A stretch of DNA of 64,000 nt. It comes from Tubulanus polymorphus. Its lineage: Eukaryota > Animalia > Nemertea. The position numbers and the translations under genes were made by a program. Below are positions 478-26,555 of the stretch, piece by piece. The notes beneath the pieces are model-generated. The model did not search any database and was not told the DNA's origin. It saw only the letters and a program-made list of their open reading frames with translations. The stretch's first letter is position 1, and each line of letters starts with the position of its first letter. Location of the stretch: NCBI RefSeq assembly GCF_964204645.1, contig NC_134034.1:496001-560000 (forward strand), written 5' to 3'.

Positions 478-3400
478 ATGTTTTATTTAGTTTTTGATTT
501 TGACTGTTGTTTTGTTGTTGAGACTGACCACAGTTTATTGAGATTACTGACACGCATAACACAATCCCTGCCCTCCTCACTCCTCCCTGCCCACTCCACC
601 TCCCTGCCTCCCTCCCCACTCCACCTCCCTGCCTCCCTGCCCACTCCACCTCCCTGCCTCCCTCACCGGAGGATGAGCGCAGTTAAACCATCGTCTTTCC
701 AGGAGCCACTGAACTCAAACGTGGAATCCCCGCAGCCCGGAAATCAGATGGTTGTTGATATCGATCTCGTTCCCGATGAAGCTTTCAGAGAATTTGCACG
801 CCTGCTCGTTGATGAATGCGTGTCAAGGTCATTGAAAAATTATGAAATGGAATCCGTCTGCCGGATGCATGTAACAAATACCAGTAGTGACAATCGAGAC
901 GATACCGAGCTGAGTTTGAAAGCAGCTGAAATTTTTGACGTCGAAAACATAGAATTCACAGACGTGGGCTGCATTACGGACTGCGTTCCGGACTACGTTC
1001 CGGACTGCGTTTTGGATTATTTCCAGAAATCCGAAGTTCGTCTGATTCGTAGCGCATCATGTGACATCGTATTCAGCAGTTCATCATCGAATTCTTCGGG
1101 AAATCCCGCGACACGTCTGTCTACATCGGTAACCACGGTTACAGCTGACTGCTGGAGCGACGCGACTGATCGCACAAAATCAACAAAATTAAAACAATTC
1201 GCGTCGGATTTAGGTATCGTCACAACAGCATCTGGTCGTCGTAGTAACGACATGAACGTGTCTAATTCGTCGGATTTGATGGCGACTGACGGTAGAGTCG
1301 ACTCCTCGTCGCGACTCCGGGAGTCGTGGAAGGAATTCGTGGAGAAATACAACGCGACCGCCGGACGGAAATCAGAAGCAGACGACGGAGACATCAGCTG
1401 CTGCAGCGACGACTCGTTCTACGACGCTCTTCGTCCGGAGGATTGCGACTGGTTTCAGAGAATCACTCGTTTAAAAACGGCCGCGCTACGCGAGACTGAG
1501 GCTGCCGCCGCGGTCGCCGTGGCAACATCGGCGAAAAAACAACGACGATTGTTGAAGATACGAAAAAAATGTCGCTGCGAATCGACGAAAAAAATCTCCG
1601 ATTCGCAAGATTCGTTCAGCGAAGGCTTCTACGAATCATCGGTTAGTCCGAGTAGCTGCGATTGGTACCACCAGGGGGCGTTGAAACCGGCGTCCGAGTC
1701 GAGTCGTTTTAATTTCGCCGTCGATTTTCATCAACTCGGCGTCGAATTAGACATCGTCGATAGCGACCCGGAGATCGTAACCATAGCGACGGCAGATGGA
1801 CGGAGTTTACATCGAGTGAGCGCTCACGAGGAACTCATCGTCGACGATGACAGCTCCGATCCGTTATCTCTAACGAGTCTATTCCTGGACGGTGGCGCCA
1901 TCGGTGGCGGGAAAACGACGAACGACGACGGTTTCAAACTTCATAAAACGCGAAGCGTCGAAAAACTTTTCAATTTGATCGAAAACGAAACGAATTCGAA
2001 CGAAATTAAAATCAAACGTAAACCGAGCATCGAGGATTTAATGAGTTTGAAAAATACGTCTGCCGTGGCGGCCGTACCTCGTGAGGACGCCGCAGAGGAA
2101 CCTCGTGAGGATTTCATCTCCACCGAGAATTACCCTCTCTCAAAAACAGCCGGTACGATTAGCCTCGATTTGACGGGGTTACCACGACAATCAGCAGACG
2201 ACGAGGAGGAGATCAGATACAATTCAGAGAATCATGAAGATGATGCCGATGATTTTGAAGTTTGTTCTGCGGATGATTTTGAAGTTTGTTCCGATGTCGT
2301 AATTCGTCAGTTCGATGAGACGTGTAAACTAGATTTCAGTGAGATTTTAGAGGAAGAGAATGATGATGACAGACGACAGGAGGAGGAGAGCAGACGTCAA
2401 ATTACATCGTGGCAGGTACTCCGCTACAGCTACTGCTGCTGCTACTGCTGCTGCCGCTGCTGCTGCTGCTGCATCTGCTGCTGCTGTTTATGCAATGTTA
2501 CAGTTACCGTTTAAATTGTCTTTCTTTATTCTTTTATTTTGATGATTTTCAAGTTCTTATGTTTTCAGACTCTTTTCAAGTTCAATTCTCAAAATCAGTT
2601 TCATTCGTTATTTCTCATTCGCATTTCATTCAGTTGAAACGTACGAATGAAATATTACACTTTTCCTTGGTTCTGATATGGTTCTGTCCGTCCCATCACA
2701 ATGACTGTAACTCCCTGTGTTCTCGTTATACTGGAGTTTTAAAGGGGTTGTCTGCATTCATAGTTAAGTGAACAATGACATCGTAGATGTTGAAATAGCA
2801 AGGCTTTCGATCCCTTCCCCAAAAAGACAGAAATTTAAGCTTAATTCTAGTGTCATCTTCCATTTTTCATGTTAGCTCAATATATTTCAAAGCAATTATC
2901 AGCATTGATAGAGTATGGGTGAAATAAAATGGGTGCCCCCCCTATAAACCTGTTGCGGATATAATTGACTCCAAATTGATGCACGCTGCAGTTGTTGTTG
3001 TCGATTAAAATGAAAACAATTATGTTGTTGTTAATTTGTAGAGCGAGGATGAATCGTCGGATCGGCGTAATAAACAACAGCGTAAGATGTCGAATCCGAT
3101 CTGTATAAAAAACAGTCAAACATCGAAAACTCGCGTAAAATCTAACGAAGATTCAAATATGAGTAAGTTCTCCGAGTGCCTTACTGTTCATTAAAACAAT
3201 TATCCTTTTTACAGCGTTTACTAATTGAGACCTGAAAGTGCTGGCGATAATTTTAAAATTATGAAAAGTTTCATTCCAGTGTTGAATATCAGGCATACTT
3301 CTATAGTGTGTCTACACCGCGGTGCGGTGTATCATTAATTACTAGTATTTCACTATGTTTGACAGGTGCTGCCATCTTTCAATAGATATAAGAACCAATT

Positions 3401-12485: not shown

Positions 12486-15111
12486 CTACTTGGTAGTAGC
12501 CTCTTGTTGTTCAAACACTGGGTATTTTGTAATCACTTCGTCCCATTGCGATCGGCCGTTTGATAAATCATTCACAAGAGTAGGTAGTTCACTCATCTGC
12601 AAATATATATATCAACAATCATTACCAGTTCCACAGATATTTTCAGTTGAAAATGAACTAATTCAGTTAACTCTCAACTGTATCCTAGGTTCTTACAGGC
12701 CAAGGAAACCGAAATTCCTTGATATTTCTTTGACCCTTGACCAAAAATTCCCTGATTAAATTACAAGATATTCTCAGTGGGGGCTGTTTCTTATAAAGAG
12801 GTTCCTTGCGTCACTTGTCAACAGCAAGAAAAATTAAAATTCCTTGATTTGATCATAAGATATCTTCAGTGAGGGCTGTTTCAAAAAATCAAGAGTTAGA
12901 ATTCCCTGATCTGTAAGAATACTCTGTATCACGTAATCCAGATCCGTAATCCAACGTAATCCAGATCCGTATTTTTATCACAACCAGAAACTTACCGGGA
13001 CTCGAATCTGTTTCATAGAATCACGTTCTCGTAACGTGGCCGTGTGCGGTTGTTTCAACGAATCGAAGTCGACGGTGATTCCGAACGGAATCGCGATCTG
13101 ATCGGTTCTAGCGTAACGTCTGCCGATCGATCCGCTGCTGTCGTCGACCTTGTGACTGACGTCTGCTCTCGTTAATTCACTCGCTATAATAAACAACAGA
13201 TGGAGAGATAATTATCAATTTGTAGCCATGGACGCAGCTTCACAGCGGCTGAATCATGAACTCATTGAACTAATGATTTACAACTACGGAATAAGGTCCT
13301 GGTTTCATCAACCAGTTTTAATTCAAACCTAAGCTGCATAGTAATGACTTGCATCCAAAATTGGTTTCAGATCTAAGGTATGACCCAAATATTAGTCAAC
13401 TGAGCCAGTTTTATAGACAGGTTTTATCTGTGGCTCCATGGGCGGCACTTAAAACTGATCTTTAACCGGCCTGAGACAATGCGTTAAAACTGTTCAATAA
13501 AACCGGCCTCTAGTTGTCTGTGTTACTTACATAAACTCTTAACAAGAGGAGTAAATTCCGGGTTGTTACTGAGAGGTAGAACTGAACACTTGTACGGCGC
13601 TATGATAGCCGGGAGACTCAGATACTGAAAATACAAACAATAGCAACAGTGACACCTAGTGGAGGCTGGTAGAGACACCTAGTGGCAGTGAGAAACACTA
13701 CATACCGTTCTTTGTTCATCGCCTTCTCTCATTCTGAAATTGTGTTCGAATATAGAATACAAGACTCTCCCGATACCGAATGACGGCTCAATTACTGACG
13801 GTACAACATCTTCAACTGAAATACAGGACATCCGTTATAGGGATCGAAATTCACTGAGAGTGGACATCCAACATAGGGATCCAAATTCACTGAGAGTGGA
13901 CATTCATTATAGGGAATGATTCTCAAACTATATATCCTTGGTCATCCATTAGAGGGAACGATCTCTAATAGCGGACATCCATCACAGTGATTATCTGAGA
14001 TGAGAGTGGACTCCGTATTGGGGATAAACTTACCAAATTCTTTCTTTTGGTATTTTTTCACCGTTACCATATTTGGAGTGATCTCAAATTCCTGATCGTT
14101 GATCGTCACTTTCACAGACCTAGAAAAAGTACAAACATGTCTGCCTTCACAAATCCCCCTATGACATCATCAAATTGTCTACTAGTTATTAGATCCATAG
14201 ACACTACTGGAAAATGTCTGCCATCCCCTTATGACATCATCAAATCGATACTCACGTATTATTGGTCAGTTTCTGTTCTAAATCGATCACTGCTGATTGG
14301 TCGAGTTTACTCAAATAATCCGTGATGATTTTGGCGTCTTTTTTAAACTGTTTTCCGATGATACTTTTCTGCGGTTGACACTCGATCACATCCACCACAC
14401 GGTGAGAGCAACAAGTCAAGGAAATCAATCAAACATCAACAATTTTTCTTCAAAATTACAAATTTCACAGGATTCTAAGGTACCCTTCATCCCTTGCTCC
14501 CCCTCCCCTCCATTCTGGTAATGAAAAGGATATTGGTTCCGGCAGTTTTTTCTCGGCACAAAGTCGAACTCCAGTCGCCTTCGTGTGCTGTTTCAAATCA
14601 TAGCACGACCGATCAGCGCAGCCGACACATTCTACCCAACCCTAAAAATTAAAAACACAATCCAATTTACAGTCGAGCAACCCTTCAGAATATACAGGAG
14701 CAACCCTTCAATCTGCAGGAGCAACCCTACGATCTACCGGAGCAGCCCTCAAAAAATGACAAGTTTAAATTCTTATATTTCAATGATGAAACTTACATAA
14801 GAAGTTTTGCATTCAGCGTCCCAGCAATCACAGGCGTAGTGAGCCATCTCGTTAGACATGTGCTGTCTGAATCGTAATTTAGTAGGGTCCACACCGACCT
14901 TCACCATAAACATGTTAATTCGCGCCATGTAGTAACCCAACGTCTGGTTAGCGATCAGACCCTGAAAATAGAGACCAACGGGACTGTGGCAAGAATCCTA
15001 GATTTTCAAAGAAAATATTTTTGTGATTAAAGAATTCGAAAGAAATTGAAGATGCTTGAAAATATTTCTTCAATTTAAAGAAGTTTTCAAAGAATCAAGG
15101 AGTATATTGAC

Positions 15112-15156
<45 letters not shown>

Positions 15157-18100
15157 AGGGAGAGGGAGAGAGAGGGAGAGAGAGAGGGAGAGAGAGAGGG
15201 AGAGAGAGGGAGGGAGAGAGCGGCGCGTCTGCTGCAAACTGACCTTACTGACAGCGTCTGCTACTGTGCACACCTCGACCCCCTTCCCGTCCATCTGATT
15301 ACACGCCGAATATAAATTCATCTTTAAATCGGCGACGTCTGCGAATTTCGGATGATCTTTCTCGTCCGGGTCGCAGAAATGTTCGATTTCGGCCATCGTG
15401 AACTCGCGTACTCGGATCAGTCCGGACCGCGGCGATATCTCGTTACGGAACGAGTTACCGATCTGGGCCGCAGCGAACGGTAGTTTACCCTGATTGAATT
15501 CTAACAATCGTTTAAAATTGACGAATATTCCCTGAGCGGTTTCCGGACGAAGATACCTGAAATAGATTTCAAATTCTATTGCAGTCCGAGTTTAGGGGAA
15601 CCCATGACCTGAATTGCGCTTAACCCCGGTCTGTGGGACTAAACGCCGGTCTTTGGAACCTGGCCCAGTCTATAAGACTGTAGCTTTTCAAAACCCACCC
15701 TTAGTTTTTCAAAATCTAAAGTATTAACAGTGCTTTTCAACAGTGGTTAAACATTTCTAAATTTTCTGAAGGAATAAATCTAACAAACCCTTTGTAATTT
15801 CCAGCGGGTCCGATTGAAGTGCTGAACATCAGATTGAATTCGATCGGTTCAGATAAGTCGTTACCGGTGATCGGAGATTTCATGTTGAATTTCATCATAC
15901 ATTCGTGCATCGCCTTCGAGTCCATGTTATCAATCTGTAAATATCACCACAATAAACACATTGATATATTCTACTTGTGTATTAGAATTCTTCAAATTCG
16001 ATAAACAAGATTTTCTAAAGGAATTATTCTGTTCATGGCGGACACCGCTCAAGTGAGTAAACGAAATTCAGCATTTGAAACTTACGATTGGAATTATCTT
16101 TTTCGCGTCTTCTTTTACATTTTCAGCCGTTTTTTTATCGGCCATCAGTTTTTCGAGATGCGCTGAAAAAAGATTTCGATAATGAGAATTTGATATAAAT
16201 ATTTCACTTTTTTCGTAGAGAATGCGAAAATTGACCAATTGTTTTATCTGTACCTTCGATCAGATGATCAGCTCGGAAACATTCACCATTTTTTAAATCT
16301 TTTACCATATAATCAGAGAATCTTTCCACATGTCCGGACGCACTGGAAATTCAAACTTTAAAGATAATACCAGTTCTACAGTTGAGACCTACTAACATAA
16401 GTCCTGAGCCCAGTTGACACTTAAATCCAAAAGTGGTTTAAGACTAGTCTTTTAAAGACTTGGGGTCTGAAGTAATTTGGTTGAAAGTTGGTCTATGACT
16501 GGTATTGAATTTAAGCAAGTGAACTAGGTAAGGCTTATGTAGGTCTATTTCAAGATAACACCAAGACTAAGTTGCAAAGTTATGAGTTAAGCCAGAGTTA
16601 AAGTTAGTTTATTTTCAATATTCTAACTCCAACTCAGAATCGTTGAACTCGGTCCAAGCTAAAACCAGGTTTAATACTAACACTAGTACCGGTTCGGGAG
16701 TTAACATGCTGCAGTCGACCTCCAACATTTGTTCCTCCAATATGAAAAATTTCCTCCAAGCGGAAATAGCATTCGCTTTTACGGCGCAACCCATCGGTCC
16801 AAAATCAAATAAACCCTGGACACCTTAAAACAACAAATTCATTCAATCAATTAAACACGTTTCTAATTAACTAATAGTTAATTAATCAATATAGTTAATT
16901 AATCTAATTAGTTAATTAATCAATGTAGTTAATTAGAAAAGTTGGTTGTGTAATGTACCTCCATATATGGAGAAAGCTTGATCGTAGAAAAATCGCTGTT
17001 TTAAAAGATCTTCCAATTTCGCTCGATCAAAATCATCTTTCGGCGCCAGAGACAGTTCCTAGAAATAACAGAGACAGTTCCTAGAAATAACAGAGACAGT
17101 TCCTAGAAATAACAGAGACAGTTCCTAGAAATAACAGAGACAGTTCCTAAAAATAACAGTGACAGTTCCTAGAAATAACAGACATCCCTAGAAATAACAG
17201 ACACATTCCTAGAAATAACAGAAATAGTTCCTAGAAATAACAGAGACATTCCTAGAAATAACAGAGACAGTCCCTAGAAATAACAGAGACATTCCTAGAA
17301 ATAACAGAGACATTCCTAGAAATAACAGAGACAGTCCCTAGAAATAACAGAGACAGTTCCTAAAAATAATATGGGACCAGCCTTCAGAATGTGGGACCAG
17401 CCTCCAGACTATTGGTCCAGCCTTTAATCTATGGGACTAGCCTTCAGTTTATGGGACCAGTCTTTACTTAATAAGACCAGCCTTCAGTTGAGACCAAACC
17501 CTAGACCAAGTCCTAGTCTATGAATAGGTAGGTTGGATATTTTAAATATCTTATCATTTGAACTGTGTGTGAGGATCAGGTGAACAGGTGTGTAGTTAAT
17601 AACAGCCGTGTCTAGAATTTATCAATTTAACATTTACATAAATAATTCTACTCAGCTCAACTCTATAACACCTGCCGTCTGAAACACCTTCATCTGATCA
17701 ATTCAAACACCTTCATCTGATCAATTCAAACACCTTCATCTGATCAATTCAAACACCTTCATCTGATCAATTCAAACACCTCAAACATTTCTATTCTGGT
17801 TCAACGTTCCAGTTCCCCTACATAGCCTAAACAATTTTTAAAATCCACCAGAAATTTGTTTACCTTGTCTTCGAGCTCTTTTTTCCTATGTTTCAAATCG
17901 GATACGGCTTTTTTCACGTCCAATTCTGGGGCTTTTTCTTCTTTCAACTTTCTAACGAGGTCGCCCTACACGAGATTAAAACAAAAAACAAAAATCCAGA
18001 ATTGATTTCAAAAATTCTGTCTAAAAATCGAAATGTCAAAAAAATTCGATTATTTTTTCGACGCTTACCTGTTCCTTGACCCTCATTCGGAACGGGGCCA

Positions 18101-18284
18101 GAATCTCTTCAATTTTCGGGTCTGACATTTTACGAACGGTTTCGAGAAGTTTCAATCGTTTTTGCTTGGTTCCCCAATTAGCGGCTTGTTTCAGTCGATG
18201 GCTGGTTTTCTGGAATAGATGTCGGCTTGTCGGGATCGAGCTGAACTGAACCAACAGATGTCGACAAAGATGGGGCAATAACAT
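12486..18284 (-). CDS. GARS1: Glycine--tRNA ligase (cytosolic/mitochondrial), about 16 exons
   Basis: WHEP domain ([23 protein letters not shown]), class II motifs [64 protein letters not shown], anticodon-binding [22 protein letters not shown]. Exon 1 18284-18069, exon 2 17965-17864, exon 3 17058-16959, last exon 12596-12486. Two in-frame ATGs: 18284 (presequence-like) and 18128 (MSDPKIEE). Confidence 0.97.
15116..15220. repeat. (GA)n/GGA microsatellite in a GARS1 intron
   Basis: Direct inspection. Confidence 0.95.
17059..17362. repeat. 22-bp tandem repeat of the GARS1 exon 3 acceptor junction
   Basis: About 14 copies of CTAGAAATAACAGAGACAGTTC. Confidence 0.9.
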
Positions 18285-18521
18285 CAGCCGTAATGTGCCA
18301 CGCTTTACTTCCGCGTGAGAACCGATCGGAGATTCCTCTCATCCGATTTCCGAATCGTATTCACGCGTCATACCCGATTCCCAAGTCTAACCGTCGGTTC
18401 TCTAAATCCAATATGGCCGCGCCCATGAGCCGGGTTTCAGCGACGTTTTTACGCTTTTTGATCGGATTTCGAGACTTTCTGTTGGAAATAAAATTCGGGG
18501 AAACGATTCTATAGTTTTGAA
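18285..18521. promoter_or_regulatory. Bidirectional promoter of GARS1 and OSGEPL1
   Basis: Only 237 bp separate the divergent ATGs; CpG-rich; ETS-like ACTTCCG near 18307 and YY1-like AATATGGCCGC near 18410. Confidence 0.7.
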
Positions 18522-20288
18522 ATGTCGATTAGGATTTTACGGCCAGTTAAAAACAGTTTGACAATTTGTAGATTATGTAAAAACGCACATAGAACTACAC
18601 TTAATGTAAGGGATAGTTCAGTCAAGTGTCGATGGCGGCGCTACTATACGGTCGAGTCGAATTCGCGGGCTGATGACGGCGGGCCGGTTTTGAAGGTTTT
18701 AGGGATTGAGACCAGTTGCGATGATACGGGTGCTGCAGTTGTAGATAGTCGAGGAAATATCTTAGGGGAATGCTTACATTCTCAGAACAAGGCGCACTTA
18801 CAGTATGTAAACTATCCGGGCGGCTCCAAGAAGTTACAGGGTCTGCGGTCCTTCCCGGTGCCGGGCCGTTTTTCTAATTCGTTGTTTTGAATATTTTGTA
18901 GGCACGGCGGAATAATACCATCATTAGCCAAACGGTATCACCAAGTAAACATACACAGAGTGGTGCAAACAGCTTTACAGCAAGCAAAACTTGATTTAAA
19001 GGTAAAAGTAACTAGGCAAACTTTACCCTGGGGCCGCGGACCCCCGAGGTCACGTCCATACAGTCCAGTGTCGGACTCCGGCAGAGACTTTGAGATCCGG
19101 GGAATTTTCAGGGGCAGTTATTGATTTTAAAACTTTTGCAAACATATGATCAAAATAATGATATCAAGTAAGTAACAGATCATGATCATTCACACGATTT
19201 TGAAAAAAAAAAAATTTTTGTACCGTTTTATTCCCAATTAGGATGTCGATGCAATCGCCACGACAGTTAAACCTGGATTAACGTTATGCCTGCAAGTAGG
19301 TCTGGATTATACGAAATACCTCGTACAACAATCCAGGTAGGTAGGACAAAGTCCCGATAATTTGAAATGAAATATTTCGAATAAATAGAATTCCTTTGAA
19401 AAATATTATACTGAAGGTGGATGACACTTCACTGTAACAATTCTACCATTTAATTCCACCCTGTCTTCAATTGTGGATAAATGTGGAAATGTTGATTTCC
19501 TCAATTTGCAGACGGCCGTTTCTACCGATACATCATATGGAGGCGCATGCGCTAACTGTTCGTCTGATCGATAAGTAAGTATCGTCACGTGACCGACGTG
19601 TGTTGTCCATTGTTGCACGGGGTTGTTTTTTGGGGGCAGGGTTCTTTTGTCTTGCATCCAAATGGGAGAACACAACCCTCTAGAACCTAAACCCTAATTG
19701 TCAGCGATTGAAAGAGCCGCCATTTCGTTTATTGATCTTTGAACAAGCTCGTGAGTGCCTTGAGAAACCTTACTCGAGAACAAACTCGTCAAATGACGTC
19801 AAACAACGACTGTAGGACCACAGACAGATCGGACCCGCGACACATCCGCCATCTATCAAATAACCCGAGATCTAAAACCTCAGCGTAAACCACGCATTAA
19901 CAGAGATATGATCGTTTCTTGCCTGAAGAGACGACGGTACCGCGCGGTGCGTCGTGGGTAAATTCATTATTAAAATGGCGGATGATCGAAGTTACGGATA
20001 CGATTCCGTTTCGACGCTTGTGTCTCGGAGAGTATCGTGACCTCCTCGTATCTTACAGCCATCCATTTTACAAGTGCGTGTGTGTATAGCTGTATAGAGC
20101 GACGTCGGGCCGGTGGGATATTGTACAACAGTGTGTATATCAGTGCTGTATTACATACACTGTATATTGTAGTCGAGAGAGGTAGAGTTACATTTACTGT
20201 CTACAACAATATGAGCCGTTTAACTAGAAACAAGGTACGAAATCCGAATCGTAGTTCAAATCAGAACGATGCATTATCGGATGACGAT

Positions 20289-20325
<37 letters not shown>

Positions 20326-23300
20326 CTGATGAGGCTGATAAAAGTGATGACTACTCGCCCGGTAGTGCATCGATTGCGTCCGCTGAATCTTCATCTGAGG
20401 TGGAAGAAGATATAGGCGACGATGAATCGGACGATTGGTTTCCGTCCGCTAGTTCACGTCGTCGCCGCCGCGGCGCTAGTGGTGGTGCTAACGCTAGTTT
20501 GAAAACCGGCGACTGGATCGACGTTTCCGAGGACGATCCCGGACCGCGTGAAATTGCGTTCACGCCTCGAGGTCCACCGGGTCCCGATGAGATGGACGGT
20601 TTGAACGAGGACAGCCCGGCGCTCGAGTATTTCAAATTACTTTTTACCGACGAAATTATCGACGAAATCGTCGATGAAATAAACCGTTACGCCGATGAGA
20701 AAATAGGCGCGTGCGAACTACCGCCCAGATCTCGTCTGCAAGATTGGATTCCGGTCACTGTTCGGGAGTTCCACACGTTTTTAGGAATCATCATCAACAT
20801 GGGAATAATCCGTCTGCCAAGCGTGTCGATGTATTGGACGTATCGATGGACGGAATCGGTTCCGTTTTTCCGCGACTCGATGAGCAGTAGCCGTTTTCTG
20901 TTGTTGTACCAGACAATGCTTCAAGTTTGTCGCAGCGAGCCCGTAGTTCCTGGCGATCCGCCCCGCGGAGCGGCGGCTGAAGCTGTCGACGCGCATAAGA
21001 TAACGCCGTTCATCGACCGCGTCGTGACCAACTACCAGCGATACTACAATCCGTATCGTGAACTGTTAATGAGTCAAGTTACTATCGGTTACAGAGGGCG
21101 AATCGCTTATAAACAACATTGTTCGAAGAAACCGTATAAATGGGGTCTGGTGATGAGAACGGTGACCTGTCCACACACGGGTTATCTGTTAAACGCTAAT
21201 CTCTACTGCGGCCGAAACGACGACCAGGAAATTGAAGCCGGTTTATCAGCGAAAGGACAAGCGGTTTTAGATATCGTGAAACCGTTCGCGAACCGTGGAC
21301 ACCATGTTTACTGTGATTACACCTACAGTAGTATTCCACTAGCGCTCAGTTTATACGATAAGAAATTCCACTTTACGGCAACCATTCGCCTCAGTTCGGT
21401 CGGGGTCCCCAGTGAGTTGAAATATCCCACTCAGATGAGACCAGGCGATGTTTACGCGTATCGGAACGGGGACGTATTGATTTTGAACTGGTACGACAAG
21501 AGCATCGTTTCGGTAATTAGTACGCTCGGAAAGGCACATGAAAAAAACCTCGTGATTGGTCGCCGTAAACGGACGGAGAAACCCGTCAGGAGACCTTCGA
21601 TCATCACGTCGGAGCAGCCCGTCAATAGACCGTCAGTCGTCTTGTCGGAAGAACCCGTCTCAAAGCCATTAGTCTTGTCGGATGAACCGGTTTATAAACC
21701 ATTATTCTACTCTGAGGAACCCGTCAATAATTCACTTGTGGCCTCGACGGAGGAATCAAAACCATCCGTCCTCTGGCCGGAGGAACCCGTCCATGAGCCA
21801 TCGGTCGCTTTGTCAGAGGAACCCAAAACATCGATCTCCTGGCCGGAGAAACCCGCCGTCTATGAACCATTAACGGAGGAACCCGATCGTAAACCGCAAG
21901 TCTCGTCAGAGGGACCCATCTATGAGCCGTCGATCGCCTCGTCGGAGGAACCCAAACCATCGGTCCTCTCCCCGGAGGAACCCGTCTATAAACCATTAGT
22001 ATGCCCGGAGGAACCCGATTGTAAACCACAAGTCGCATTGGAGGAACCCGTCTCTAATCCATCAATCGTCTCGTCGGAGGAACCCGTCTCCTATCCATCG
22101 GTCGTCTTGCCAGTGATCGGCCGTAGTGAACACTCGGAGTCACCCGTTTATAAACCGTCTGTCGTCTGCGAATATAACAAACACATTTCGAGAGGAATTT
22201 ATTTACGAGAACAGCTCAATCGATATTACAACAACAGCAGGAAATCGATTGTCTGGTGGAAAAAAGTATTTTTCTGGATGGTTGAAAGTTGTATTTCAAA
22301 CGCGTTCATCTTGAAGAAGCTTCACAGCAGCTCTGCGGGGGGTAATGACAGACGACTGACTCTGTTGAAATTCCGTCAAGAGCTCGTCGAACAACTCGTG
22401 CCGCCACCTAGCGACGATGGACCGCGATCGAAAAGAGGGCGACCTTCGCAAGGGCCACCGGTTCAGAGACTGGACGGAAGATTCCACGCGATCAATAAAC
22501 GTCGTCAGAATAAACAGTGTAAAGTTTGCAGCGATCGAGCTAAAGGAGAGAGACATACAGTGTCTACTTACTGTGAGACATGTCGCGATCAACCAGCCTT
22601 ACATGCCATAGGCTGCTTCGAGCGTTATCATACCGAACTGAATTACAGATAAATTGAACTCGAATTTTGAAATGTGGAAATGCCGGCGTTATGGCGTTGG
22701 TGTTGTTATGGCATTTAGAAATGCCGCTGTTAATATGGCATTTTAGAGATTGTGGTGTTATGCCATTTAAAACAGGGTCACCTTTTTCTGACATTTTGTA
22801 CGAATAGAAAATAATACATTTTTGAAATTGAACAGTGAACTGTTTGAATTGTTTATTATTAAGAGATTTTCGACGATCTAAGAGTAACTGTCCAGAGCCC
22901 CGGGTAAGAGCCCCCCCCAGCACTAGGACCTGCAGTTTGAATATGATCGATGTTGTTTTTGCTGTAGGGTTGAATTCCCGTTCCTCGTGTTGCTGGTCAG
23001 CGGTGGTCATTGTCTATTGTTGTTGGCACGTGATGTGGATGATTTCCTGTTGCTCGGCAAGAACTTGGACGACGCGCCAGGAGAAGCGTTTGATAAGGTA
23101 CATTTTCCACGTGGCACCAGATATTGACCTTGGAAGGCCACAGACATTAGTGGAACACCTGAACAAACAGACTTTCTGGTCACCTGAAGTTCGTTGTAAC
23201 GAGGTTCCATTGTATTCGAGTCGACGACGACTGTTGTAATCGAGGACTCCACCAGGTGTCGCTTGTAGGCATCAAGACGACTTCTCTCAAATCATTTAAA

Positions 23301-25435
23301 ATCGACCCATAAACATTTCTCAAATTCGACGTGAGATGCACAGAAACTGTACATAAACCTTTAATCAAGAGGAGACTAAAAACTTTAACTAAATTGAAAA
23401 TAATCTCAAATTTGATCAAGTTGTTGATACACGTGATACGCGTCACATAAAAAACTGATAGGGATCCTGGTTTAAGCTGGTGCAGCACGTGGGCTTTCAT
23501 AGAACAACTCGTCCTTTCTCTTTTCAGACAGCCAGAAGTTTGAAATTAAAACTGTTGCCTGACTGCGAGGATTTGAGTGGTGGTCGCGCAATCGAGATGC
23601 TAGCGACTAGTGGCAATCCGCGAGCGTACGATATACCGATCGTGTTGGCGCAGGCGCAGAACTGTGATTTCTCATTTTCCGGATTGAAGGCGTCGTATAA
23701 AAGTAAAATCGAGGCCGAGGAGAGGAGACTGAGTATGAACCCCCCCCCCCATACTGTCCATCCCCGATATCATGCATTTAACCTCCAATTCCCCTCGATA
23801 TGCTGCCCGTCGACATGGCCGCCTCCCTTTATATCACTCCCTCGTTCTCAGAACAGGATGCCCGAATATTGGAGGCAGTTTGTTTGAAAAAAAATCTTGT
23901 TTGATCCGTCCTCACCTCCTGTGTGACCCGTCCTCACCTCCTGTGCGACCAGTCCTCACCTCCTGTGTGACTTGTCCTCGCCTCCTGTGTGACCCGTCCT
24001 CACCTCCTGTGTGACCCGTCCTCACCTCCTGTGTGACCCGTCCTCACCTCCTGTGCGACCAGTCCTCACCTCCTGTGTGACTTGTCCTCGCCTCCTGTGT
24101 GACCCGTCCTCACCTCCTGTGTGACCCGTCCTCACCTCCTGTGTGACCCGTCCTCACCTCCTGTGTGACCCGTCCTCACCTCCTGTGCGTCCCGTCCTCA
24201 CCTCCTGTGCGACCCGTCCTCACCCCCTGTGCGACCCGTCCTCACCTCCTGTGTGACCCGTCCTCACCTCCTGTGTGAGCTGTTTCGTGTTAGAGTGGAG
24301 ACAACTTAAAGTTGTTTTGTGGTAAACAAAAGATGCACAATTTCAAAATGTTTGTTCTATTTTTTTCAGATTTAGCTCAACACGAATTGATTACGAATGT
24401 CAGTGACGTGTGCGCGTCGTTTCAATACGCCGTTCTACATCATTTAGCCAAACGCGTCCAGAGGGCGCTGATTTACTGCGAAATGAACGACTACCTTCCA
24501 CAAACCGGCAAACAGTTGGTTCGTTAACAAAACCCCTCGAACATTTCAGCATAGAATAAAAAATCTAAAATTGCGCCATCTATATTTAAATAGTCCGCTC
24601 TCATATTTGAATCCGCCATTTTCTTTTTTGTCGTGATTTTGATTGACAGGTTGTATCGGGAGGCGTGGCCAGTAATATGTTTATTCGTGGAGGTTTGAGT
24701 AAGATGTGTGAGGCGTACGACTGTCAGTTAGTTTGTCCACCTCCGAGTCTCTGTACCGATAATGGAATCATGATAGCTTGGTGAGAGTCCCGTAAAACCC
24801 CTCCCCTCCCCCTCCCATCCCCCTCTCCTCCCCATCTTTCGCAATTCTTCAGTTGCAGCATGATCTAAAATAGGTTTATTTCTGATTCCCGTCAATTTTC
24901 TGCTTTCAGGAATGGAATCGAAAAATTACGTTTGAATCGCGAAAAATACTTGTCTGATGTCGAAATGGTCGAAGTTGAACACAGGTTAGAATATATATAT
25001 AGTAACACCACTCGTCGATAGATGGCGTACGAGATGTTGTTTCAAAAAATTGTTATCGTAATTGTTATCGTAAATGTGTTAGAAATAACTGGCGCATTCT
25101 ATCTCGATAGTGGAATTTGCACGGATAAGATCACTAGTATACCCTGGCAGATGAGAATGAGGTTACGGGGTAGTCGAATGTAGTCTGAGGTATCACAATA
25201 GTTCGCACAAATTCCGCTAGGGGACCGTACGGTGCTGCCACCTGTATAGTTGCGTAAACTGCGGGATGACGCCCAAATTGACATTATAATCTGAGATGGA
25301 ACTTGTTTTAGAATATGTTGACCGTTTTAGCTCACGTTGATTTTGATTTAATTTTCCAGATCTCCGATAGGGGTCGACATCCGACACGATGTGGAATCAT
25401 CGTGTATTAAACTCAAAACCGTCCGCTTGCTGTAG
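18522..25435 (+). CDS. OSGEPL1: Mitochondrial tRNA N6-threonylcarbamoyladenosine transferase (Qri7/TsaD family), 10 exons
   Basis: Motifs [31 protein letters not shown] (exon 19512-19574), [48 protein letters not shown]; basic presequence-like N-terminus; junction phases consistent; stop TAG 25433-25435. Confidence 0.95.
20211..22652 (+). CDS. piggyBac transposase-derived protein (PGBD4-like), intronless, 813 aa, nested in OSGEPL1 intron 4
   Basis: piggyBac core motifs ([77 protein letters not shown]) and C-terminal Cys-rich domain (CKVC...YCETC...LH...CFERYH). First ATG at 20211. No TTAA-CCC...GGG-TTAA termini recognised in the flanks. Confidence 0.9.
23905..24277. repeat. 21-bp minisatellite in an OSGEPL1 intron
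   Basis: CCGTCCTCACCTCCTGTGTGAC-type unit. Confidence 0.9.
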
Positions 25436-25879
25436 ACGACACGTGACGTCATAGTTCGGTCATGTCAATAAATCGGGAGCGGGGCTCGGTAACTTCCGTG
25501 TGGAGACTGAAGTCAAAAAGTTGTCTCTAAATCAAATCTTAAGTTGTAAGATTGGCTATAGAACTAAGCTGGTCTTAGGCTTGACTATGAATACAGCCCC
25601 AGGGAATTTACAAACTTCAGTCAAGTAAAAGAAGCCAAAAGCTGTTTTTTGTATAGATTTGCATGCACTACCTGTAGATTGTATTAAAATATAAATTTCT
25701 GTGTATAAATTTCAGAGGAAAAATAAAACAAACTCATTTATATTGAGTAGTTATATTGAGTAGTAGGTGTCATAGTGGGCAGTTTGATGACGTCATAGAA
25801 TGATTCGAGGAGGAAGACATCTTTTCTGGAAGTGTCGATCAAATCACTAGTAAACAATTTGATGATGTCATTCCGATTG

Positions 25880-26555
25880 GTGCTGATGCTGAATAGAGGA
25901 TGTACAGGGGTTCGAACCCATTGATTACTGACACTGATTCTGAGTGGTCCTGAAACTAGATAGAGGGTGTCCTGGGTTCGAACCCAGTAATTACTGATAC
26001 TGATTCAGAGTGGTCCTGAGGCAGATTAGAGGATGCACAGTGGCGTCCCGGCCGTACGGTGCTGCCGCTATGCTCATCGTAAGCGGGTTTTTCATACACT
26101 ATTGTAAATCTACTCTGGCAATCGACGTGCTCTCCAGTAATACTCCGTAACCCTTGCTTGCCAGAGTTGACATACGTTAGTGTATGAAAATCCCGCTAAC
26201 AATGAGCATAGCGGCAGCACCGTACGGTAAAATGTTGATATCTTAACAAAAGTAATTACTGGCACTTATTCACAGTGGTCCTGATGCTGAATAGAGGATG
26301 TACAGGGGTGTCCCGGGTTCTAACCCGGTCTATTGGTACTGATTCTGAGTGTTCCTGATGCTGGATAGAGGATGGAAAGGGTTGTCCCGGGTAAAAAACC
26401 CAGTAATTATTGGCACTTATTCTGAGTTGTCCTGATGCTGAATAGAGGATGTACAGGGTTGTCCCGGGTTCGAATCCAGTAATTACTGATACTGATTCAG
26501 AGTGGTCCTGATGCTGTATAGAGGATGTACAGGGATGTTCCGGGTTCGAACCAGG
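25880..26555. repeat. About 78-bp tandem repeat containing a Pol III B-box-like motif
   Basis: Unit GTGGTCCTGATGCTGAATAGAGGATGTACAGGG..GTCCCGGGTTCGAACCCAGTAATTACTGATACTGATTC; interrupted by a MITE. Confidence 0.8.
26057..26222. mobile_element. Tc1/mariner-like MITE inserted in a tandem array
   Basis: TA-CGGTGCTGCCGCTATGCTCAT...ATGAGCATAGCGGCAGCACCG-TA with imperfect arms of about 65 bp. Confidence 0.65.

Follow-up and report, generated by a model that had tools for sequence, protein, structure and literature searches.

A probable domesticated, non-catalytic piggyBac-derived gene nested in an OSGEPL1-type intron of a ribbon worm

The locus and its host gene

This report concerns a stretch of 64,000 nucleotides (nt) from the ribbon worm Tubulanus polymorphus (contig NC_134034.1, positions 496,001 to 560,000, forward strand), which we call the window, and an open reading frame (ORF) of 813 codons in it that resembles a piggyBac transposase and lies inside an intron of a housekeeping gene. 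We regard it as probable, at about 0.7, that this ORF is a domesticated, non-catalytic piggyBac-derived gene, similar in kind to the PGBD genes of other animals. Positions are those of the window unless a contig is named.

The host gene was recognised by searching its exons one by one against protein profiles. Matches to TsaD (Pfam PF00814) fall on exon-sized pieces of the plus strand around the ORF, and in NCBIfam exons 1 and 5 match the bacterial-type TsaD model (TIGR03723) better than the Kae1-type model. In exon 1 a leader of 58 residues precedes the TsaD domain, which fits the expectation for the mitochondrial OSGEPL1/Qri7 type. Judged by its sequence, the host is a TsaD/OSGEPL1-type gene of the mitochondrial OSGEPL1/Qri7 kind, whose product modifies tRNA.

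Sequencing run X2 is taken to be RNA because its host contigs are spliced, with five GT..AG joints: 18802 to 18902, 18999 to 19240 (the cut possibly lies 2 nt further right, 19001 to 19242), 19574 to 22968, 23095 to 23526 and 23732 to 24370. The boundary between exons 3 and 4 (19336/19512) was read from the sequence. The third joint places the ORF, on the host's strand, within intron 4, where an earlier reading of the window from its letters alone (the sequence-only reading) had put it. The other host introns measure 99-637 nt. The features around the insertion are:

19512..19574 (+): host exon 4; its end comes from the RNA joint, and unspliced read-through into the intron meets TAA immediately
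19575..22967 (+): host intron 4, GT..AG, 3393 nt, spliced out in run X2; contains the ORF
22968..23095 (+): host exon 5, placed by the RNA joint and by the profile (TsaD positions 124-165)

The ORF and its product

In the ORF listing the frame is open from 20037 to 22652 on the plus strand; the first ATG, at 20211, begins 813 codons that end in TAA. Frame and ATG were verified, and the ORF is uninterrupted, as had been claimed. Its parts, given with residue (aa) numbers and, where the prediction supports them, with the predicted local distance difference test score (pLDDT), are:

20211..22652 (+): PGBD-like gene, unbroken piggyBac-derived ORF of 813 codons, TAA at 22650-22652
20211..20510 (+): N-terminal region rich in Ser, Asp and Glu; pLDDT below 50 at aa 1-86 and above 90 from about aa 100
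20508..21572 (+): dimerisation/DNA-binding part and RNase-H-like catalytic core with insertion domain, aa ~100-454; pLDDT above 90
21072..21077 (+): first catalytic position by alignment, Ser288-Gln289 where relatives carry Asp-Glu (D268-E269 in Trichoplusia ni, T. ni)
21315..21317 (+): second catalytic Asp by alignment, D369, equivalent to T. ni D346, kept
21573..22130 (+): in-frame tandem-repeat insertion, aa 455-640, 186 residues, in units of 33 nt or 11 aa
22200..22211 (+): third catalytic position by alignment, Tyr664 for Asp (T. ni D447) and Glu667 for D450
22485..22631 (+): C-terminal Cys/His-rich zinc module, all ligands retained
22653..22804 (+): probable 3' untranslated region (UTR), from the end of an unspliced RNA contig

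The product matches the Pfam family DDE_Tnp_1_7 with 216.8 bits (E 6.5e-64; cut-off 22.4). Its match to zf-Tnp_2 is weak, 18.9 bits against a cut-off of 24 bits. An NCBIfam scan of the ORF returned no match, which is expected because that library consists of bacterial and archaeal models, and an Rfam scan of 17000-26000 found no family. Among solved structures, sequence alignment finds piggyBat (9c0f, E 3e-45) and T. ni piggyBac (6x67, E 1e-14). An AlphaFold2 model built from a 60-sequence alignment has pLDDT above 90 at residues ~100-460 and 641-813 and below 50 at 1-86 and 465-640. In Foldseek this model matches piggyBat 9c0f with E 1.5e-26 and a template modelling (TM) score of 0.82 by target, and piggyBac 6x67 with a TM score of 0.77. 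By profile score and by predicted fold, the product is a member of the piggyBac transposase superfamily.

The C-terminal Cys-rich domain had been described as intact, and every Cys and His of the zinc module is indeed present (H759, C770, C773, C788, C791, C802 and H807). The N-terminal region includes a Ser run encoded by (AGC)n at 20289-20320 and a patch of five arginines. This patch (RRRRR, aa 82-86) and two other basic patches (RRKR, aa 451-454; KRGR, aa 742-745) could serve nuclear import.

A feature that the sequence-only reading had not described is the 186-residue insertion. Tandem Repeats Finder reports periods of 33 nt and 132 nt across 21574-22089, and in the protein there are about 17 units of the pattern EEPVxKPSVxS (34 P, 31 E, 29 S and 24 V in all). 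The repeat separates the insertion domain from the strand with the third catalytic position, and is predicted to be disordered. It is absent from all the relatives that were compared. The closest relative, L002, has at this site only a loop of ~30 residues containing EKPV and STEEP, and a loop of this type is the likely seed of the repeat.

The catalytic site

In T. ni piggyBac, mutagenesis has shown that each of D268, D346 and D447 (the DDD triad) is needed for excision, and that changing a catalytic Asp to Glu or Asn already cripples it (PMC2533014). Aligned with these residues, the window protein reads S288, D369 and Y664 (nt 21072, 21315 and 22200). The degenerate triad of the sequence-only reading is therefore real, and its coordinates were exact. 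The flanking residues have changed as well: the Glu equivalent to E269 is Gln289, the conserved D450 is Glu667, and one additional residue, R, stands immediately before the third catalytic position. At the three motifs L002, L003 and the two nearest public proteins, P0002 and P0003, all read MDESMIGYKGR, YCDRLY and GVDLHDQ. The window protein has YCDYTY at the second and RGIYLREQ at the third.

In the same 60-sequence alignment, 49 positions show at least 85% conservation among the remaining 59 members, and the window protein deviates at 10 of them (H238Q, D288S, E289Q, Y303H, G390A, R396S, M659I, D664Y, D667E and K681V). L002 deviates at one and L003 at two of the 49, and P0002, P0003 and P0005 at none of 48. 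Such a comparison indicates that the losses of catalytic residues are derived and specific. Since two of the three Asp that are essential for excision have been replaced, the protein is very probably unable to cut DNA, judging by homology, as the claim of a catalytically dead transposase had it.

Copies, transposon ends and relatives

The worm's own genome (268 Mb in 77 contigs, in which the window is C10:496001-560000) holds at least 80 piggyBac-like matches and one copy of the window gene. The next-best match, L002, is 67% identical in protein, has an open frame of 703 aa and lies 1.15 Mb away on the same contig. Further matches are 50% (L003), 47% (L004, broken) and 46% (L005) identical. 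With the nearest paralogue at 67%, the gene is single-copy, and the near-identical dispersed copies that would have told against the sequence-only reading are absent.

Both L002 (G000:C10:1660905-1665029, ORF at 1120-3168) and L003 (G000:C3:19040450-19044685, ORF at 1378-3267) have intact ORFs, and no terminal inverted repeats (TIRs) are detectable within ~1 kb of either. With their DDD triads intact, no TIRs and a family background of 0.06 in omega (the ratio of non-synonymous to synonymous rates, dN/dS), they may be domesticated rather than mobile. L005 (G000:C66:27872-32023) has an intact ORF on the minus strand (L005:1009-2769) of 587-588 aa and belongs to the same piggyBac subfamily. Its catalytic site is degenerate, with Q for the first Asp and E for the third, and it deviates at 8 of 48 conserved positions. 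On this basis L005 is a candidate for another non-catalytic domesticate.

No transposon ends were found around the window gene either, in agreement with what had been noted from the letters. A generic search for inverted repeats around the ORF found nothing. When the 636 nt upstream were aligned locally with the 315 nt downstream in reverse complement, the score was 20; shuffled sequences averaged 19.3 with a maximum of 31. All pairs of TTAA flanking the ORF were checked and none marks transposon ends.

A family-specific search was also possible. P0003 sits in a complete element of 2.25 kb with TTAA and 20-nt TIRs (TTAACTCTTTCCATGTCAAA), present in two marine-metagenome contigs (L016/L017), and the subfamily therefore descends from real transposons. 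Even when up to 3 mismatches are allowed, no copy of this TIR turns up in the 64-kb window. Compared with the flanks of the window gene, L002 and L003, the TIR and the untranslated regions of the element score no higher than shuffled controls. The P0003 element is 52% identical to the window protein over 503 ungapped aligned codons, and the two share their domain order and zinc module. Unlike the window gene, the element has its TTAA and TIRs, a compact body and an intact DDD triad, and it is without the repeat insertion.

Relatives in public protein collections were sought by word searches of proteins clustered at 90% identity and by an exhaustive search of 1.84 billion representatives of 50% clusters. 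The latter gave 11,470 matches at E <= 0.001, the nearest non-self protein being P0002, at 53% identity. Clustering at 50% could hide closer kin within the query's own cluster; the word searches of the 90% clusters likewise found none. P0002 derives from contigs of ~2.1 kb in three runs of another organism, and P0003 from marine metagenomes.

An autonomous piggyBac-like element (PBLE) would have TIRs flanked by TTAA, a DDD triad and several similar copies. By published definitions, the lack of TIRs, of DDD and of additional copies means that the window gene is not a PBLE (PMC5381638).

RNA from the locus

The sequence-only reading had asked for a check of RNA. In X2, RNA contigs cover the whole ORF at a depth like that of host exons, and they carry neither strand nor start site. 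The unspliced contigs span 19546-20278 (depth 16.4), 20330-20485 (19.2) and 20532-22804 (32.5), and coverage of the ORF breaks only at the (AGC)n run. For comparison, host intron 2 has a depth of 0, intron 7 about 3, and host exons 20.6 to 80.8. Two other runs, X3 and X4, which come from the same sample, look like DNA because they have no joints and cover intron 2. A further run, X5, the sole one presumed to be RNA from a different study, gave no contigs here, which says nothing either way.

On the downstream side, the bin 22801-23000 has a depth of 14.0, which 4 nt from the ORF contig and 33 nt from exon 5 explain in full. Once these flanking contigs are subtracted, 22805-22967 carries no RNA depth, so that coverage ends 163 nt before exon 5. 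RNA that stops about 150 nt past the stop codon, inside the intron, is not what plain intron retention would give, and the ORF RNA probably has its own 3' end near 22804.

Host intron 3 (19337-19511) is also covered unspliced in X2, by a contig at 19307-19575 with a depth of 35, as high as over the ORF. Either this intron is often retained in host RNA or it is part of the RNA of the piggyBac ORF.

Selection on the protein

Another sample differs from the reference at 19 positions of the ORF. Outside the repeat, 8 of these single-nucleotide polymorphisms (SNPs) are synonymous and 4 non-synonymous, over 418 synonymous and 1484 non-synonymous sites, which gives a ratio of non-synonymous to synonymous polymorphism (pN/pS) of 0.14 (binomial P 0.0011). 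Inside the repeat, where mapping is less sure, the count is 3 synonymous to 4 non-synonymous.

Divergence was examined over 503 ungapped codons. The pairwise dN/dS between the window gene and L002 is 0.16, with dS 1.3; deeper pairs are saturated. For the branch test we used our own implementation of the GY94/F3x4 model with six sequences and the maximum-likelihood topology (L001, L002, (L003, (L005, (P0002, P0003)))), in which dS is saturated on the deeper branches. Omega is 0.335 on the window branch and 0.062 elsewhere (test of equal omega, P 2e-8), and a likelihood-ratio test (LRT) against omega = 1 on the window branch gives P 0.028. In protein the window branch has a length of 0.37, compared with 0.15 for L002. 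The window branch is clearly accelerated, and its average omega is still below neutrality. A dN/dS near 1, which would have spoken against the sequence-only reading, is not what is seen in either polymorphism or divergence.

If the excess dN were the product of a terminal neutral phase, that phase would need about 0.13 substitutions per site. In simulations with substitutions only, a frame of 813 codons stayed open in 0.45% of trials at 0.05 substitutions per site, and in none of 2000 trials at 0.08 and above. Polymorphism, divergence, the branch test and the survival of the ORF, taken together, speak for selection that went on acting on the protein once catalysis was lost.

What might the gene be, and what might it do?

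The following history would explain these observations. A piggyBac transposon would have inserted, in the sense orientation, into intron 4 of the OSGEPL1-type gene of a ribbon worm, and would afterwards have been stripped of its terminal repeats and of two of the three Asp that bind metal. What was left may have been retained as an expressed protein-coding gene, and beside the dead active site it would have gained the disordered repeat of ~186 residues rich in Pro, Glu and Ser. The transposase body (its dimerisation/DNA-binding and RNase-H-like parts) and the zinc module would have been kept, and cut-and-paste catalysis given up.

Several suggestions can be made regarding the function of such a protein. 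The likeliest is a nuclear, non-catalytic module that binds DNA and dimerises. It would either work on its own, tethering or regulating, or, itself inactive, partner or inhibit the paralogues that have kept their DDD triad. Translation, nuclear localisation, DNA binding and partners are in every case what we infer. A DNA-binding, dimerising tether would fit because the body and zinc module are kept, the metal site is destroyed and two disordered acidic regions lie beside the body or within it. The role of inactive partner or inhibitor of paralogues of the L002/L003 type is a tentative idea, about level with that of the lone tether. It is the most specific one that can be tested, because the genome holds L002 and L003, which are DDD-intact, TIR-less and strongly constrained. 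A degenerate site thus stands beside intact ones in a single genome.

Comparable systems are known elsewhere. Kobuta of Xenopus is a piggyBac-derived gene that has largely lost its catalytic Asp and is reported to inhibit the Uribo transposase by forming heterodimers (as cited in PMC5381638 and PMC2533014). Kobuta, like the window gene, is a TIR-less ORF that keeps only the middle Asp (the equivalent of D346) and has DDD-intact relatives in its genome. It differs in its documented interaction and conservation over ~100 Myr, in having no Pro/Glu repeat insertion, and in belonging to another animal phylum. Human PGBD1, PGBD2 and PGBD3 are likewise single-copy and TIR-less, and their DDD is not conserved (PMC5381638, PMC2268245, PMC3459987); PGBD3, too, lies within a host intron on the sense strand. 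With none of the vertebrate PGBD groups is the window gene orthologous; the public protein nearest to it is the transposase-like sequence at 53% identity. In contrast to PGBD3, no splice from exon 4 into the ORF is seen here.

In Paramecium, PgmL1-5 are non-catalytic partners of PiggyMac (PMC6143343). They are like the window protein in being piggyBac paralogues with degenerate sites beside one or more catalytically intact paralogues, and unlike it in having an established function, in programmed DNA elimination in ciliates. We know of no process of that type in ribbon worms.

The label that we use, PGBD-like, is a strict one. Of the marks of PGBD genes set out in the literature (PMC5381638), a single copy and selection by Ka/Ks are both found here, with a marginal branch test; presence at the same position in several species is not yet among them. 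On the whole the observation of the sequence-only reading is borne out and its interpretation is supported in large part; a promoter of its own, restriction to one lineage and a role as repressor or scaffold are not established.

Several points weigh against our reading, and they should be stated together. No orthologue of the window protein was found in the public protein collections that we searched, so the same position in several species is precisely what is missing. The RNA contig of the ORF is continuous with host exons 3 and 4 and the retained intron 3, and part or all of the RNA signal could come from an intron-retaining host isoform, in which the ORF would follow an ATG-rich leader of ~900 nt. 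From the contigs neither strand nor start site can be read, nor a true depth profile or reliable level. The SNPs counted number just 12 and come from contigs of a single further sample. Against omega = 1 the LRT is marginal, dS is near saturation, and the length of the window branch, 2.5 times that of its sister, also fits relaxed constraint.

Some of these points would suit a dead relic that is under no selection for a host function, with a frame still open through recent inactivation and with RNA that is retained intron or pre-mRNA. The missing orthologue, the continuity of the RNA with exon 4 and intron 3, an acceleration of 2.5-5 fold and an LRT that reaches no more than P 0.028 are all on its side. 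We consider such a relic unlikely, although it survives better than the other alternatives. Ten family-invariant residues have been lost, the change from D to S takes two steps, and the repeat has expanded to 186 aa, and therefore the inactivation was not recent. The neutral divergence that the excess dN calls for would have closed the 813-codon ORF with P > 0.99. SNPs are skewed to synonymous sites. The RNA has at least 10 times the depth of other introns and ends short of exon 5.

A more ambitious version of the domesticated gene is that the genome holds a small family of piggyBac-derived host genes that are strongly constrained and have no TIRs, the DDD-intact L002 and L003 providing catalysis and the degenerate window gene and L005 a scaffold, in an animal complex like that of PiggyMac and the PgmL proteins; this would be a domesticated machine for cut-and-paste, at work on host DNA. 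We think this improbable.

Could the ORF instead be joined to its host, as in the human CSB-PGBD3 protein (PMC2268245)? In that case host exons 1-4 would be spliced alternatively to an acceptor shortly before the ORF, and an N-terminus from OSGEPL1 would be joined to the transposase-derived body. The ORF is on the host gene's strand, no stop interrupts its frame over the 75 codons before the ATG, and an AG with a fair pyrimidine tract would give a phase-compatible exon start at 20075. The acceptor that looks best (exon start 20059), however, is out of phase, unspliced read-through from exon 4 stops at once at TAA, and the sole X2 joint that leaves 19574 goes to 22968, none entering 19986-20400. 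A fusion was rejected for want of a joint between exon 4 and the ORF in X2, and we now regard it as very improbable. Unlike PGBD3 in its fusion with CSB, the window ORF is apparently carried on unspliced RNA with its own 3' end. Least credible of all is a transposase still active through substitute residues, or in trans on the ends of other copies: nothing is missing from the body or the zinc module, both fold well in the model, and the second Asp is kept, but Ser and Tyr cannot replace metal-binding Asp where even D to E or D to N cripples excision (PMC2533014), and both TIRs and a second copy are absent.

If a domesticated, non-catalytic gene is the right reading, what would it add? The text of the 2017 survey of the piggyBac superfamily makes no mention of Nemertea or Lophotrochozoa (PMC5381638). 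The window gene probably adds one animal phylum to a known type of transposase taming. From vertebrates and ciliates, genes domesticated from piggyBac have been well described. The locus is a clean ribbon-worm candidate whose source can be traced, with an intact TTAA/TIR element that is 52% identical to it and paralogues at 50-67% that have kept DDD. The events can be put in a dated order: the ends were lost, the catalytic site eroded, and the disordered repeat then grew at the dead site. With this source family, this order and the evidence from expression and polymorphism, it lends itself well to the question why a transposase body is retained after cutting is lost. It holds no new principle.

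Upstream repeats and neighbouring features

The sequence-only reading had also given the gene a promoter of its own, with YY1-like motifs upstream and a transcript starting near 19850-20050. The strings are where it placed them. The YY1-like core AAATGGCGG occurs five times in the 64 kb (5130, 19717, 19973, 24613 and 54827) against 0.28 expected from shuffles; two of these copies fall in the 500 nt that precede the ORF, and a variant, CCGCCATCT, is at 19846. The upstream features are:

19687..19735 (+): copy of a dispersed repeat of ~50 bp, with telomere-like CTAAACCCTAATT and GCCGCCATTT; motif at 19717-19725
19941..20000 (+): 60-nt fragment of a hAT-like miniature inverted-repeat transposable element (MITE), holding AAAATGGCGG at 19972-19981
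19985..20210 (+): ATG-free leader of 226 nt (chance probability about 0.035); could be the 5' UTR, given a start of transcription near 19985

The parent of the 60-nt fragment is a dispersed element of ~640 bp with internal inverted repeats of ~110 nt. It is called a hAT-like MITE because of its termini, CAGGCACTTGAATATGGGCTTTGA, and its apparent 8-bp target duplications; full copies are found, e.g., at L019:1001-1636, L024:949-1595 and L022:1425-2033. The ~50-bp unit, which joins CTAAACCCTAATT to GAGCCGCCATTTTG, recurs with 84-88% identity and unrelated flanks at three or more other loci (L027, L028 and L029), and is either a promoter module or a repeat.

As two of the three upstream YY1-like motifs lie in repeat fragments, we do not count them as evidence of a dedicated promoter. 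Repeat ancestry explains them, and they may still have promoter activity. The claim of a promoter of its own is therefore not established: the RNA contig runs on from host exons 3 and 4, and no start site is visible near 19850-20050, RNA being continuous there from exon 4. The ATG-free 226 nt would suit a start near 19985.

The leader is also polymorphic. Contigs of X3 and X4 leave the reference at 20031 and re-enter it at 20006 or 20051; this allele is an insertion or duplication, and the inserted sequence includes another AAAATGGCGG. The halved X2 depth over 19546-20278 may reflect two haplotypes of the sample.

Two observations concern the surroundings. Host intron 5 contains, at 23162-23215, a single monomer of ~54 nt of an abundant satellite. 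This satellite has at least 240 matches in tandem arrays on many contigs, with spacings of 71 or 89 nt, and the monomer draws depths in the thousands in runs X2-X4. On the other side, the minus strand carries exons from ~14000 to 18284 whose translations we take to be those of glycyl-tRNA synthetase. That gene stands head-to-head with the OSGEPL1-type gene, and the ~240 nt between their start regions (18285-18521) are likely to be a bidirectional promoter.

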